64,000 nucleotides of DNA from Macrostomum lignano (lineage: Eukaryota): positions 1-64,000 of the forward strand of contig NIVC01003341.1 in the NCBI GenBank assembly GCA_002269645.1, written 5' to 3'. This document shows positions 27,751-58,265 of the stretch, piece by piece (within the stretch, counting starts at the first letter, position 1; the number at the start of each line of letters is the position of its first letter). Position numbers and translations under genes: made by a program. Under the pieces are notes generated by a model. That model was not told where the DNA came from. It saw only the letters and a program-made list of their open reading frames with translations, and did not search any database.

Positions 27751-30700
27751 TCAAATGTTACATGGCTGGCTTCTCAGATCGGTCTGCTCAAATTGGCTGT
27801 GCATCAGCTCTTCATCAGCTCCTGTCTGGCCGCCATTGTACGGCACGAAGGTGCTTCCATCGCTTTCATAGTGCCCAACCGCCAGGGTGTACAGCCGCTC
27901 CTGCAGCAGAGGGCCTTCGCTGCCTTCGTCGGACTCCTCATCCGAGCTGGAAGATTCAACCGAGCTGACGAAGACCACGGCAACGAATCTGGGGACGCAC
28001 TGCGGAGTTAACGCGCGATGATAGATAGCTTGTAAAGATGGCTACGATGTTGGGGAGATTCTGATTGAAGGATGACCTCAGCGGGTAACCCCTTAAATAC
28101 ACCACTTAAAGCTGTACGTGTAATTCGCATTTAAGAGCCGCACTCAAGCAGCAACAAGGGTGCAATGGCCTGGACTGTGGCTCCCTCTGCAGCCTGGGCC
28201 ATGGGGTCTGATACCCAATCGACTGAACTGCGAGCACCCTGTCTGTTCTCCTCACTGATTTACTGCCCTGTGAACACTCCCTCTTTGCTATGCATGCACT
28301 GCCGTCTATCTGTTGCTGTCAGTATCTTTCGAACCGCACAGCAGCACGCCTGAATCAAGTTGGGGCTCAGGACCCCATAAATACATTAAAACGGAAACTT
28401 CGACTCCCACAATCTGGACACTGTCTTACTTCTGTCTGCCTGCCACTCGGGAGCCACGTTCCCAGTGAAAATGCTTCAAATACTCCCTCGCAATCGGACT
28501 TCGCTCCATTCGAAGTCATCACAAAGGGAATAAAAGCGCCGTCAGCCAGCAGACAGTCGAAGCGACTGACCTCGCCGGTCATCATCAGGTCCCTAGCCAT
28601 AAATGGCTGTTGGTGCACCCATTTCTCGACAGCGACTCTCCACATCCTTTTTATCCAATGCTCAGCTGCATCATCTTCTCTCCAGTACAATCCTTCAGAG
28701 TACCTGCCTAGTTACCATGCGGCCTGCCTCTGCCACTTCGTCCCTCAACACCGCCTTCAACCACAGCCTGCAGCACTCTTGCAATGAAGAAGCGGTCCCT
28801 TTTAATCCAGCCGTTAGTCTTCTTCTCCTTCCAGGAAATGACCAGCATTCTTCTGTAGGTCTTCATCTGGAAAGCTCTCAGTCGCCTTTCAGCTTTCTTC
28901 TCTAGCTCTGTTTTCCACCTCTCACAGGCGTAGAGAAGAGTTTCCATGACTACAGATCTCATCAGCAGCATTAAATTTTTAATGGGATGTTTTTTGCTCT
29001 CCACATGTTTCCGTTTCGGGGAAATCTCGGCGGGGAAATCTCGGCTGGGAAATCTCGGCTGGGAAATCTCGGCTGGGAAATCTCGGCTGGGAAATCTCGG
29101 CTGGGAAATCTCGGCGGGGAAAACTCGGCTGGGAAATCTCGGCTGGGAAATCTCGGCTGGGAAATCTCGGCTGGGAAATCTCGGCTGGGAAATCTCGGCG
29201 GGGAAATCTCGGTGGGGAAAACTCGGTGGGGAAAACTCGGAAGGAAATCTCGGCTGGGAAATCTCGGCTGGGAAATCTCGGCTAGGACATCTCGGCTGGG
29301 AAATCTCGGCTGGGAAATCTCGGCTGGGAAATCTCGGCGGGGAAAACTCGGCTGGGAAATCTCGGCTGGGAAATCTCGGCGGGGAAAACTCGGCTGGGAA
29401 ATCTCGGCTGGGAAATCTCGGCTGGGAAATCTCGGCTGGGAAATCTCGGCTGGGAAATCTCGGCGGGGAAAACTCGGCTGGGAAAACTCGGCTGGGAAAT
29501 CTCGGCTGGGAAATCTCGGCGGGGAAAACTCGGCTGGGAAATCTCGGCTAGGACATCTCGGCGGGGAAAACTCGGCTGGGAAATCTCGGCTGGGAAATCT
29601 CGGCGGGGAAAACTCGGCGGGAAAACCTCGCTGCGGGAAATTCTCATAGACCCGCTATTTGAGCAATCTGCTCGCTCAAAAAAAGTTGCCTCTATGAACC
29701 CGTTCTCAAATGCTGCCTACCAAAATGCTTTCACATCATCCAGTTTGTATTATGGCGTCTTAAACTTATTCACAGAATTATTTCGATCAATTGCAACTTG
29801 GCCGTGGCTTTCTCTATGCTTCTGTTTGAAACTCAGCATAGCTATATCGCTCAAAAGACTAGATCTCATTATTAATAACACATTCTCATAGTTAAGCAAG
29901 AAAGCTACAGCAATAATACGCACCTTTGAAGGCAGGTTGGCATATTGTACTCCGGTCTCAGAGCCGCTAATTTGCGGAGCAGGTCGATCTGGTATCTCCT
30001 GCGGCTCGCGATTGGTTGGCGGTTTTCGTTTCCTAATCAACACTAGAGCAACGGTGACAGCCAGGGCTGAGGAGAGCAGAAAAACTCCAATGATAATCCA
30101 GGCTAATCTGAAATCTTCAGAAATGTTACCAGAAGAGTCCAAGTCAACTTGAAAGCCTGTTTTGGATTGGCTTGGAAGAATCTGTATAGTTTCTAAGTGA
30201 TAAATATCTGTAGACATTTTGCTATCAGACATCCACCTACAATGCAGCCAGCCTTATAATTAATTTGCGTGTAAATCATGACCGATTTTCCCTAGCTAAA
30301 CAGAACATCCGTTTCCAAGCGCTAAGTATGAACGACAGATTGTAATAATAGTAATAATAATTGATACAACTGCCCCAATGGGCAGATGTGCAACCGACAG
30401 CTCAGCATCTGAAGGCTGCGTACGGCTGTTCAGTCCAAGGACTGGAGGGGGGTCGCCACACACAGCCTCAATTATCCCAGCTAATGCTGGCACCCATTTT
30501 ACAGCTGGGTGAACTGAAGCAATGCAGAGTTAAGTGTCTTGCTCAATGACACAAATTGTTCCGAGTCGAGAATCGAAATCGAGAATCGAACCCCCGACCT
30601 TCAGTCCGACGCTCCAACCACTAGGCTACAACCCCTACTGACTGTAGGTAGACAAAATATGAGAATTGTATCCGTGGGGTCTCATCCATCAAGAGTTTGT

Positions 30701-56800: not shown

Positions 56801-58265
56801 AGTGCTAATTAGATGCTAGCTAGTCTCACACTGTCTCAGAGTGCTAATTAGATGCTAGCTGGTCTCACACTGTCTCAGAGTGCTAATTAGATGCTAGCTG
56901 GTCTCACACTGTCTCAGAGTGCTAATTAGATGCTAGCTGGTCTCACACTGTCTCAGAGTGCTAATTAGATGCTAGCTGGTCTCACACTGTCTCAGAGTGC
57001 TAATTAGATGCTAGCTGGTCTCACACTGTCTCAGAGTGCTAATTAGATGCTAGCTGGTCTCACACTGTCTCAGAGTGCTAATTAGATGCTAGCTGGTCTC
57101 ACACTGTCTCAGAGTGCTAATTAGATGCTAGCTGGTCTCACACTGTCTCAGAGTGCTAATTAGATGCTAGCTGGTCTCACACTGTCTCAGAGTGCTAATT
57201 AGATTCTAGCTGGTCTCACACTGTCTCAGAGTGCTAATTAGATGCTAGCTGGTCTCACACTGTCTCAGAGTGCTAATTAGATGCTAGCTGGTCTCACACT
57301 GTCTCAGAGTGCTAATTAGATGCTAGCTGGTCTCACACTGTCTCAGAGTGCTAATTAGATACTAGCTGGTCTCACACTGTCTCAGAGTGCTAATTAGATG
57401 CTAGCTGGTCTCACACTGTCTCAGAGTGCTAATTAGATGCTAGCTGGTCTCACACTGTCTCAGAGTGCTAATTAGATGCTAGCTGGTCTCACACTGTCTC
57501 AGAGTGCTAATTAGATGCTAGCTGGTCTCACACTGTCTCAGAGTGCTAATTAGATGCTAGCTGGTCTCACACTGTCTCAGAGTGCTAATTAGATGCTAGC
57601 TGGTCTCACACTGTCTCAGAGTGCTAATTAGATGCTAGCTGGTCTCACACTGTCTCAGAGTGCTAATTATATGCTAGCTGGTCTCACACTGTCTCAGAGT
57701 GCTAATTAGATGCTAGCTGGTCTCACACTGTCTCAGAGTGCTAATTAGATGCTAGCTGGTCTCACACTGTCTCAGAGTGCTAATTAGATGCTAGCTGGTC
57801 TCACACTGTCTCAGAGTGCTAATTAGATGCTAGCTGGTCTCACACTGTCTCAGAGTGCTAATTAGATGCTAGCTGGTCTCACACTGTCTCAGAGTGCTAA
57901 TTAGATGCTAGCTGGTCCCACACTGTCTCAGAGTGCTAATTAGATGCTAGCTGGTCTCACACTGTCTCAGAGTGCTATTTAGATGCTAGCTGGTCTCACA
58001 CTGTCTCACACTGTGTGTCCCAGACTCCCTCTGCCTCATCATGCATCATGAGAATGAGTCGGTCAGCGTCACTCACCCCAGTCTCGCACGCTCACCGCCT
58101 CCAGCATCATCGGCTGCCTCAGCTGCATCACAATCCACCGAGGCCCGGACCGCACAGCAGCAGGGAATCGGTTTGTCTCTGACTGCCGACTCTCCCACCA
58201 ACGGCAGTGCGCACCGCTGGGTTGCCAGGTGCGCAGAACGTCAGCCCTGCTCAGCTGCAGTGTGA
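50849..58265 (-). CDS. Receptor C: discoidin/F5-8C-like, 3 Ig-like domains, TM, short Tyr tail (first exon not located)
   Basis: In-phase exons 58265-58077, 56676-56522, 56434-56368, 56252-56077, 55559-55400, 55312-55152, 53895-53715, 52555-52389, 52191-52038, 51921-51770 (TM), 51001-50849 (SIYDYETV); ~571 aa. Several exon lengths (189, 67, 181, 167) equal those of A. Confidence 0.85.
51159..51462 (+). repeat. (GACA)n microsatellite
   Basis: Direct reading. Confidence 0.97.
52207..52380 (+). repeat. (GATA)n microsatellite
   Basis: Direct reading; fills most of the 52388-52192 intron of C. Confidence 0.97.
52628..53635 (+). repeat. ~20-bp minisatellite (ttattatctatggggtgtcm)
   Basis: Direct reading. 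Confidence 0.95.
54130..54378 (-). mobile_element. tRNA-derived SINE family 2
   Basis: Minus strand gggggccgtagcccagcgg (A box)...ggctcgattcc (B box); homologous inverted copy at 55817-56010. Sits between two parts of the 19-bp array. Confidence 0.7.
54378..55120 (+). repeat. 19-bp purine-rich minisatellite (gagagagcagagggcatgg); short outlier at ~53965-54018
   Basis: Direct reading. Confidence 0.95.
55817..56010 (+). mobile_element. tRNA-derived SINE family 2, diverged copy
   Basis: Shares gtgcagtcacat...ggcttggctctgc...aattaac...gagggccaaccccc...aaagttagggccgctgtacactcc with 54130-54378. Confidence 0.7.
56700..58010 (+). repeat. 39-bp satellite, ~33 units, intron 2 of receptor C
   Basis: Same unit as in A and B. 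Confidence 0.97.

Follow-up and report, generated by a model that had tools for sequence, protein, structure and literature searches.

The window analyzed here is a stretch of 64,000 nucleotides from the flatworm Macrostomum lignano (NCBI GenBank assembly GCA_002269645.1, contig NIVC01003341.1, positions 1 to 64,000 of the forward strand); it is eukaryotic DNA with a GC content of 35-63% per 2-kb window. It carries three genes, A, B, and C, arranged head to tail on the minus strand between positions 27751 and 58504. We show that they encode type I membrane proteins of the immunoglobulin (Ig) superfamily (IgSF) and lie in recombining tandem arrays, in which the DNA for most of an N-terminal domain (the cap) is nearly uniform from copy to copy and the Ig-like domains and tails are divergent. 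The reconstructed genes and their first exons are as follows.

27751-36372, minus strand: gene A, 14 exons, 779 amino acids (aa); signal peptide, N-domain, four Ig-like domains, transmembrane (TM) segment, and 121-aa tail; from spliced alignment to P0012, P0013, and P0015
Gene A exons, minus strand: 36372-36282, 36200-36012, 34268-34102, 34020-33954, 33886-33714, 33639-33456, 33412-33258, 33092-32912, 32517-32351, 32265-32121, 32049-31931, 31295-31127, 30207-29924, 27999-27751
38264-49558, minus strand: gene B, 14 exons, 696 aa; architecture as in gene A, with a 78-aa tail; junctions fixed by P0017 and P0018
Gene B exons, minus strand: 49558-49477, 49360-49172, 48904-48747, 48660-48594, 48501-48323, 47916-47781, 47699-47536, 46794-46620, 46521-46361, 46257-46116, 45076-44970, 44882-44711, 43863-43718, 38476-38264
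50849-58504, minus strand: gene C, 600 aa in 12 exons; signal peptide followed by the N-domain, three Ig-like domains, the TM segment, and a tail of ~50 aa
Gene C exons, minus strand: 58504-58405, 58265-58077, 56676-56522, 56434-56368, 56252-56077, 55559-55400, 55312-55152, 53895-53715, 52555-52389, 52191-52050, 51921-51770, 51001-50849
36282-36372, minus strand: gene A exon 1, signal peptide MNRKLWNLLLLMLNLQ..., donor CAG/GTGAGA, phase 1
49477-49558, minus strand: gene B exon 1, signal peptide MMTTGLGTILLLMAVWKAG..., matching the N-terminus of P0018
58405-58504, minus strand: gene C exon 1, signal peptide MQLCQVLQPVLIILYLGIATQ..., a leader also found in P0017 and in the first gene of its locus

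All three open reading frames (ORFs) are intact, every intron is GT-AG, and neighboring genes are spaced 1.3-1.9 kb apart. The genes follow a common phase plan (1, 1-1, 1-0, 0-1, then alternating pairs of 1-0 and 0-1 exons); exon 2 is 189 bp and exon 4 is 67 bp in each of them, exons of 181 bp and 167 bp are common to A and C, and one of 142 bp is common to B and C. Three collinear units are likewise visible in the minus-strand stop-to-stop ORFs, in DNA self-comparison, and in translated self-comparison. A chance origin is excluded, because three spliced ORFs of 600-779 codons occur together with collinear, weakly similar exons and with database paralogs that use the same junctions. An earlier, sequence-only reading of this DNA had proposed three head-to-tail minus-strand genes with one phase plan and several equal exon lengths, and the rebuilt genes are indeed three intact ORFs; the motifs that it quoted are all present, including HHGSELVC. 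Its extent of 27751-58265 is correct at the start, but the end moves to 58504 with the addition of the signal-peptide exon of gene C (58504-58405), and signal peptides, which it had placed in A and B only, are thus present in all three genes. Each protein has one TM segment with a Kyte-Doolittle score >2.3, and the N-glycosylation sequons (13 in A, 17 in B, and 6 in C) all lie N-terminal to it, on the ectodomain side.

The gene models were built with our own spliced protein-to-genome aligner, using database paralogs as guides. Where the tail of the guide differed, the aligner placed spurious short exons inside minisatellites, and these exons were discarded; TM and tail exons were set by open frames, splice phase, and paralog tails, the donors of gene B exons 6 and 7 were set against P0017, and the 3' exons of gene C are based on ab initio calls and collinearity with A and B. 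Gene B is 94.5% identical to P0017, an NCBI model based on RNA sequencing (RNA-seq), and 91.7% identical to P0018, both of which use exactly its modeled junctions, including a last exon 5 kb downstream. These NCBI BOX15 models, together with P0022 and P0026, which likewise agree with the modeled junctions, derive from a genome-guided RNA-seq transcriptome (PMC5730564). A minisatellite is present in almost all introns; most of those of A, B, and C are filled by large ones (29019-29624, 38600-40149, 41023-43645, 52641-53628, and 54380-55115, with periods of 14, 41, 14, 20, and 19 bp, and others), reaching 2.6 kb and containing long spurious ORFs on both strands.

The part that the three genes have in common at the DNA level is a block near their 5' ends, together with a minisatellite inside it.

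34135-36209, minus strand: homogenized block of gene A (exon 2, the entire intron 2, and exon 3 up to ~135 bp)
48778-49370, minus strand: homogenized block of gene B
56543-58271, minus strand: homogenized block of gene C
34289-35945, no strand assigned: minisatellite of gene A intron 2, 39-bp unit, 42.6 copies with 98% matches
48925-49105, no strand assigned: the same minisatellite in gene B intron 2, 39-bp unit, 4.6 copies
56697-58008, no strand assigned: the same minisatellite in gene C intron 2, 39-bp unit, 33.6 copies

The blocks of the three genes share 97.7-98.5% DNA identity, with the intron counted in (98.2-98.5% for the block of gene A against those of B and C). The identity begins at the exon-2 acceptor, and the introns upstream of it are unrelated. 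At the protein level, exons 2-3 are 86-90% identical, exon 4 is 44-48% identical, and the Ig region 26-30%; the tails, at 22-28%, are effectively unrelated. The receptors had been described as highly diversified; this is true of the Ig region and the tails but not of exons 2-3, with their ~98% DNA identity. The variable sites in exon 2 are all nonsynonymous (7/7), and intron 2 is as conserved as the exons that flank it; because of these two features, the uniformity of the cap indicates gene conversion acting on DNA (concerted evolution) and not just constraint on the protein. The minisatellite within the homogenized tract may act as a recombination hotspot.

For comparison we used a syntenic copy of the array, the P0017 locus on scaffold NIVC01001776.1 (Mlig_3_7) of the same assembly (here L001), which is 91-98% identical to the window in DNA. 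The block is 93-98% identical in DNA at six copies in L001 and at three more on another scaffold (L002), where the neighboring Ig exons have 40-60% protein identity. L001 carries its six exon-2 copies in 87 kb and has no counterpart of the body of gene C, for which the best match in L001 or the databases has 45% identity. In the first gene of L001, exons 1-2 are of C type and the body is of B type, the two meeting within the minisatellite, and this C/B hybrid is the footprint of unequal homologous recombination in the conserved block. NCBI stretches the 702-aa gene for P0017 across 77 kb (L001 10001-87216); that protein is already encoded by the compact hybrid gene, at L001 10001-17990. For P0017, splicing over long distances within the array was considered and rejected, since the hybrid gene and a second B-like copy provide a better explanation: the 77-kb annotation arises because this B-like copy lies further along the array, at L001 ~80-87 kb, where it probably captured the 3' exons of P0017 in transcript mapping.

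Gene A is 89% identical in protein to its syntenic L001 copy. We compared the window genes with their L001 counterparts by Nei-Gojobori counts of the ratio of nonsynonymous to synonymous rates (dN/dS), a check that the sequence-only reading had called for. In gene A, dN/dS is 0.76 for the Ig region (65 nonsynonymous and 26 synonymous changes) and 0.28 for the tail; in gene B, it is 1.5 for the Ig region (20 nonsynonymous and 4 synonymous) and 0.14 for the tail. Ectodomain and tail differ in a pooled Fisher test (p=0.004). The tails are thus under purifying selection, a constraint that speaks for functional genes; the rate of ectodomain evolution is neutral or close to it and fits either diversifying selection or relaxed constraint. 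The description of the genes as clustered and fast-diverging is borne out both by this rapid ectodomain evolution and by the copy-number variation between the window and L001.

These comparisons bear on the question of whether the array is a set of genes at all, or is decaying and nonfunctional, with the block of exon 2, minisatellite, and exon 3 being a dispersed repeat or mobile element that mimics exons. The block does occur at many sites with 93-98% DNA identity, including on another scaffold, it contains a minisatellite, its exon-2 differences are all nonsynonymous, and the region is rich in repeats and has a Ty3/Gypsy insertion. However, ORFs of 600-779 codons are kept through 12-14 exons with canonical splice sites, the block always takes the same in-frame position with the exon-2 acceptor as its upstream edge, and within the window it is never found outside a gene of the family. 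Moreover, RNA-based models include the block, the tails have dN/dS values of 0.14-0.28, and a divergent homolog of the cap (P0051, 36% identity, E 5e-21 in a small local search) reveals an evolving protein domain rather than just a repeat. We therefore consider decay of the array very improbable, and the idea that the block is a transposon or exonized repeat was rejected on the grounds of the intact ORFs, the fixed in-frame position, and P0051.

Relatives of the three genes were sought in two billion-scale protein searches, and those at E<1e-6 are all from M. lignano: 10/10 matching proteins with the N-domain as query, 6/6 with the downstream part of gene A, and 32/32 with an alignment of A, B, and C. 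An exhaustive hidden Markov model (HMM) search of 1.84 billion cluster representatives returned only 38 proteins at E<=1e-3, and membership in the family was not shown for any of the four weakest. Three of these were looked up: an unnamed fish protein at E 2e-6, and two vertebrate Ig proteins, CD22-like and VCAM-1, at E 3e-5 to 5e-4; such weak vertebrate matches are generic Ig similarity. About 60 uncharacterized M. lignano predicted proteins in UniProt and NCBI belong to the family, under names such as 'Ig-like domain-containing protein', 'hypothetical protein BOX15_Mlig...', or plainly spurious automatic names, with no precomputed Pfam domain in any of them. Literature searches found no description of a flatworm family of this kind, and its gene identifiers were not found in the supplements of three M. 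lignano expression studies or in a full-text search. The proposal of an undescribed family therefore holds in that no paper on it was found, but the family is not wholly new to the databases, given its ~60 anonymous predictions; no clear match to a known conserved family was found. Some ~7% of M. lignano transcripts are polycistronic precursors (PMC5730564), which accounts for the fused two-gene UniProt proteins P0011, P0019-21, and P0015. The transcripts of six family proteins outside the window (P0002, P0023-P0025, P0029, and P0030) are without exon 4, which encodes the last strand of the cap, and without the first half of the first Ig-like domain (D1), going straight from …DRWRQLGRAYNE into the second half of the Ig domain; they may represent shorter paralogs or isoforms that skip exons.

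The ectodomains consist largely of repeated units of ~105-120 aa, each encoded by one phase 1-0 exon and one phase 0-1 exon.

31127-33886, minus strand: Ig-like domains D1-D4 of gene A, each encoded by a pair of exons (eight in all) with a phase-0 intron between them; fold taken from the P0017 model
44711-48501, minus strand: Ig-like domains D1-D4 of gene B, from the P0017 model
52050-56252, minus strand: Ig-like domains D1-D3 of gene C

Multiple Ig-like units had been proposed; of units with two exons each, four are present in A and in B, and three rather than four in C. We modeled P0017 with AlphaFold2 from a 28-sequence family alignment, and this model stands in for A, B, and C. Residues ~280-530 (D2-D3) have a predicted local distance difference test score (pLDDT) of ~80, with ~55-68 for D1 and ~65-81 for D4; the Ig-like domains are strand-rich throughout, and a long helix coincides with the TM segment. 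Foldseek searches of the PDB with this model gave 1238 matches at E<=1e-3, the top ones (E 6e-10 to 1e-6) being SYG-2 D1-D4, ICAM-5, nectin-1, SIRPα, PirB/LILRB3, CD22, and MAG. Pfam, applied to single-exon translations and to the complete proteins, finds no Ig profile above threshold in A, B, or C, the best being C2-set_2 in one member at E 0.04; the distant members P0050 and P0060 pass the C2-set_2 threshold, and P0060 falls just under that of C2-set_3. The Cys pair of the B and F strands, with a spacing of about 50-60 residues, is present, for example in D3 of gene A (...TSSAC...(52 aa)...WSVRCSVNQSG) and in its D2 (...RIRCSI...GRKILCRV), and the F-strand 'x-L/V-x-C' motifs GSELIC, GRKILC, GGELYC, and GSELVC are among the few invariant columns of the alignment. 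The earlier assignment of these units as Ig-like is upheld by the fold model and its Foldseek matches to Ig folds, along with the weak profile matches to CD22-like and VCAM-1 proteins, and the model supports the view that the ectodomain repeats are C2-like Ig domains.

Some of these structural matches would suit ordinary adhesion molecules of the nectin, SynCAM, or SYG-nephrin type, acting in tissue or synaptic contacts. The best Foldseek matches include SYG-2 (nephrin-like), ICAM-5, nectins, and Necl-4, the Ig domains are split over two exons as in N-CAM-type genes, and tail motifs of the forms YD(V/Y)P and YEDP recall the Nck/Crk-binding YDxV/P sites of nephrin and p130Cas. Foldseek favors any multi-Ig ectodomain, however, and LILR, SIRP, and CD22 score nearly equally. 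Adhesion families of the IgSF are also usually conserved across phyla, whereas the A/B/C family is found in M. lignano only; the dN/dS of its ectodomains comes to ~0.8-1.5, and the window and L001 differ in copy number and gene content. We thus consider an ordinary adhesive role unlikely.

The cap precedes the Ig-like domains and is encoded by exons 2-4.

33954-36200, minus strand: N-terminal domain of gene A, ~145 aa, exons 36200-36012, 34268-34102, and 34020-33954

The sequence-only reading had described this domain as discoidin-like, a claim that was not sustained beyond a likeness of motifs. Pfam at E up to 10 gives neither F5_F8_type_C nor any other match to the cap in A, B, C, six paralogs, and two distant relatives, and a profile of 11 N-domains finds no match among PDB sequences at E up to 10. 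The cap has a pLDDT <30 in the full-length P0017 model; a model of the domain by itself, from an alignment that includes a sister subfamily, is beta-rich with a pLDDT of 57.7 and a predicted template-modeling score of 0.58. Foldseek with this low-confidence model finds no significant match (best E 0.49, probability <0.2, template-modeling score ~0.3). Among the weak, nonsignificant matches are the GnT-IVa lectin domain (template-modeling score ~0.3, probability 0.2), which we take to be of the CBM32/discoidin type, and other lectin folds of the jelly-roll type. The sister subfamily (P0055, P0063, P0054, P0059, and P0049, of which P0059 is a Macrostomum-type sequence) has the same Ig-TM architecture, and its N-domains align with those of the core family.

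It is nonetheless a substantial, if doubtful, possibility that the cap truly belongs among the F5/8C discoidin or F-type-lectin domains and binds a glycan, which would make these proteins membrane lectin receptors. Three resemblances at the level of motifs occur in discoidin order in the core cap ('i.a.WQ(S/P)S', 'G(P/Y).WL(V/L).(Q/K)L..P..l..v.v', and a terminal 'L.(W/F).al.i.G'), and they are clearer in the sister subfamily (P0055 and P0063: AQSWQSSVY; YQWLLIKLTKPARLVAVTV; VGTEVLLLGE...C; FNFVGLEIEE). Core and sister N-domains also align by hhalign over 90 columns with E 4.7e-4, but with a probability of 33%, and the beta-rich model and the lectin folds among its best matches, none of them significant, are set against empty Pfam and PDB sequence searches and the low model confidence. 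In F5/8C domains a disulfide links the first and last residues; this clasp is missing from the core cap, which starts with LDCS and ends in ...LNLQG without Cys, its other Cys residues lying in AHCRWW and NPCRAS. The fucose triad of F-type lectins is His...Arg-x-Asp...Arg/Lys, and it too is not present in the core cap, where the aligned position reads FPAA, without the His, followed later by SVRDWDGQW with a single Arg; P0055 comes nearer to the triad (FHSG...ARPGELKRR) but with other spacing. On comparison of the motifs, the resemblance to galactose-binding-like jelly rolls is genuine. Otherwise, the cap is a new domain family with no detectable relatives; it is ~145 aa long, beta-rich, and possibly a lectin-like jelly roll.

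Two substitutions distinguish exon 2 of gene B: a W>G change (VSVRDG for VSVRDW, ~49176-49178) and an R>C change (AHCCWW, ~49297-49299). Both sites are invariant in almost all other members of the family, and these may be recent changes in a homogenized block.

The 3' exons encode the TM segments and tails.

29924-30207, minus strand: gene A exon for the stalk, the TM segment (LAWIIIGVFLLSSALAVTVALVLI), and the juxtamembrane region, which includes VQYANL
43718-43863, minus strand: TM exon of gene B (LRLVLFTTVVCGLLSVASVIGCATIML)
51770-51921, minus strand: TM exon of gene C
27751-27999, minus strand: tail exon of gene A, in which GHYESDGSTFVPYNGG comes after an acidic, Ser-rich run, the GHYESDGSTFVPYNGG motif being kept in P0026 and P0025
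38264-38476, minus strand: tail exon of gene B, TDYEDPDVYSQI...SPYVNYL, the tail being identical in P0017
50849-51001, minus strand: tail exon of gene C, SIYDYETV, with related YD(Y/V)P motifs in P0012-14 and P0022

The tails fall into three classes, A, B, and C, each with its own tyrosine motifs. The GHYESDGSTFVPYNGG motif of gene A recurs in P0026 and P0025, which are otherwise highly divergent; the gene B tail compares with YYEDPDEYWEI of P0019, and the gene C tail with AYDYPST...SVYLVL of P0012-14 and PYDVPTS of P0022. Tail motifs are kept between paralogs that are only ~33-40% identical overall. The C-terminus of the sister protein P0055 has a VVYAQV resembling an immunoreceptor tyrosine-based inhibitory motif (ITIM) and a TEYTEI resembling an immunoreceptor tyrosine-based switch motif (ITSM). 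Matches to [ILVS]xYxx[ILV] occur in A (VQYANL), P0011-14 and P0020 (SVYLVL), and P0055, and none in B or C; by our own estimate, a tail with four tyrosines carries one ITIM match by chance with a probability of ~0.3. None of these proteins has a kinase domain. The earlier claim of single-pass receptors with nonkinase tyrosine-motif tails is thus corroborated, each protein having one TM segment and the motifs being conserved within tail classes, and signaling through the tail tyrosines is a reasonable inference from their sequences.

Several known systems are similar in organization. In Siglec-5/14, Siglec-11/16, and the CEACAMs, the exons for the ligand-binding N-domain are kept near-identical by gene conversion and the tails differ (PMC5701461, PMC2832619, PMC4042635). 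Like these paired receptors, the A/B/C genes are tandem type I IgSF genes with a uniform membrane-distal module and differing TM segments and tails, here with a 5' block of 98% DNA identity and three unrelated tail classes; the defining pattern, a near-identical stretch from exon 2 through intron 2 to the 5' part of exon 3 with the remainder divergent, is present in A, B, and C. They differ in that there is no homology past the generic Ig level, the cap is not a V-set Ig domain, homogenization extends over dozens of genes at several loci rather than over pairs, the Ig stalk is extremely divergent, and A, B, and C have no charged TM residue pointing to an adaptor with an immunoreceptor tyrosine-based activation motif. 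Vertebrate paired receptors are the closest functional analogy; the A/B/C family is not a member of those families, because homology is undetectable beyond the Ig fold.

LILR/PirB, KIR, and SIRP, some of them among the top structural matches, also have a multi-Ig ectodomain, a single TM segment, and ITIM-like tails, and form tandem clusters with copy-number variation, unequal crossing-over, and hybrid genes. However, they use one exon per Ig domain rather than two and have no non-Ig cap, no sequence homology to them was detected, and a strict ITIM is found here only in gene A and some paralogs. Hydractinia Alr1/Alr2, Biomphalaria FREPs, and amphioxus VCBPs are similarly lineage-specific, clustered, and fast-diverging, and their Ig domains are joined to further modules, of which some are lectin-like; the sequence-only reading had already drawn the analogy with Hydractinia Alr. 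Neither database search matched a protein from a cnidarian, mollusc, or cephalochordate, and whereas FREPs and VCBPs are secreted with a C-terminal lectin-like domain and the N-terminal domain of Alr is hypervariable, the N-terminal domain here is the constant part. DDR1/2, DCBLD1/2, and neuropilins, single-pass proteins with an N-terminal jelly roll, are comparable only if the cap is discoidin-like; the tails of DCBLD proteins have YxxP motifs that bind CRK/CRKL, and these resemble the YEDP and YDVP motifs of the A/B/C family. These proteins, however, have no Ig domains and are encoded by conserved single-copy genes, the DDRs have kinase domains, and the cap has no F5/8C profile match.

Taking these observations together, we judge it probable that A, B, and C are part of a functional tandem array of Macrostomum-restricted type I IgSF surface receptors, with a homogenized cap, divergent Ig domains, and tails of at least three constrained classes. 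Tandem duplication and unequal recombination would alter copy number and produce hybrid genes, and gene conversion would keep the block from exon 2 through intron 2 to the start of exon 3 at 93-98% identity in all copies. The Ig region would diverge at a near-neutral or diversifying rate, with the tails held by purifying selection. The shared cap could then be a common ligand- or partner-binding module on a variable Ig stalk and, by analogy with paired receptors, the differing tails could route its recognition to different Src homology 2 (SH2)-domain effectors after tyrosine phosphorylation.

Several points weigh against this interpretation. First, genes A, B, and C are known here from DNA alone, and gene C has no database counterpart at all. 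Second, the cap has no recognizable fold or ligand according to the PDB sequence search, the domain model, and Foldseek. Third, strict ITIM/ITSM motifs occur only in A and some paralogs and VQYANL is not kept in P0026, a member of the same tail class; because the strict ITIM is not universal and VQYANL not conserved, naming specific SH2 partners would be guesswork. Fourth, relaxed constraint rather than diversifying selection could lie behind the ectodomain dN/dS of ~1, and gene B contributes few substitutions. Finally, the window and L001 could be alleles, homeologs, or paralogs, M. lignano being a neopolyploid with a redundant assembly.

Judged from sequence, the role of these receptors could be of an immune or allorecognition type, as the sequence-only reading had suggested, or it could be adhesive or reproductive. 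Reproductive or gamete recognition, involving sperm, egg, or the female tract and evolving fast by sexual selection in an outcrossing hermaphrodite, would suit a lineage-restricted, tandemly expanding family with fast-evolving ectodomains, and a lectin-like cap, if real, parallels gamete-recognition lectins such as oyster bindin. Reproduction-related genes are reported to evolve rapidly in Macrostomum (PMC7336406). Nothing in the sequence is specific to reproduction, however, and with the identifiers of the family absent from the supplements of the three expression studies, we consider this role distinctly improbable. A bolder and rather unlikely form of the receptor-array interpretation is a flatworm-specific system that inverts the plan of classical variable receptors: gene conversion associated with the minisatellite would keep a constant and possibly lectin-like cap uniform across the genome, and this cap, mounted on hyperdivergent Ig stalks with alternative tyrosine tails, would form a many-membered 'paired receptor' system for self/nonself, microbial, or mate recognition; the cap would then be a new domain family, in a phylum without a known system of this type.

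Other features of the window lie around the array. A Ty3/Gypsy-type long terminal repeat retrotransposon is located just downstream of gene A (22946-27546), with minus-strand ORFs at 24064-27243 (RVT_1, RNase H, and integrase zinc-binding) and at 23279-24139 (frameshifted, with the integrase core, rve); the insertion is not in the syntenic L001, so that it is polymorphic or copy-specific. A short interspersed repeat, SINE-like in appearance, occurs at 22678-23034, 30296-30549, 37482-37650, and 44295-44610, in introns of A and B and downstream of A, and its translation includes …MCNRQLSRSYCAAHLKAAYGCSVQ…GELKQCRVKCLAQ…. A tandem duplication of ~10.6 kb (155-3595 and 10668-14169, 90-96% identical in DNA) carries two copies of another gene for a single-pass membrane protein (minus-strand ORFs 655-1074 and 11285-11662; …SFTDCSEQLPALISFPDAARNRCGDS…, then a TM segment). 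It has no Pfam domain and matches the N-terminal part of the fused protein P0015, and the same duplicated-gene neighbor therefore lies beside an A-like gene at another locus.

What is new and noteworthy here is the homogenization of the N-domain, the members of the family being already in databases as anonymous predictions. The family accounts for public mis-annotations in M. lignano, namely a 77-kb 'gene' and the fused two-gene proteins, and it is a clean natural case of mosaic evolution, in which one module is homogenized across dozens of genes and the rest is 26-30% identical, with a hybrid gene documenting recombination in the homogenized tract. Flatworms are major models for regeneration and parasitology, and to our knowledge almost nothing is known of their surface recognition receptors; M. 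lignano is amenable to RNA interference and transgenesis, and the array reveals a large lineage-specific repertoire of IgSF receptors with conserved tyrosine-motif tails in this tractable species. Should the caps share a ligand and the tails differ in their signaling, the principle of paired receptors would have had an independent origin outside the vertebrates.

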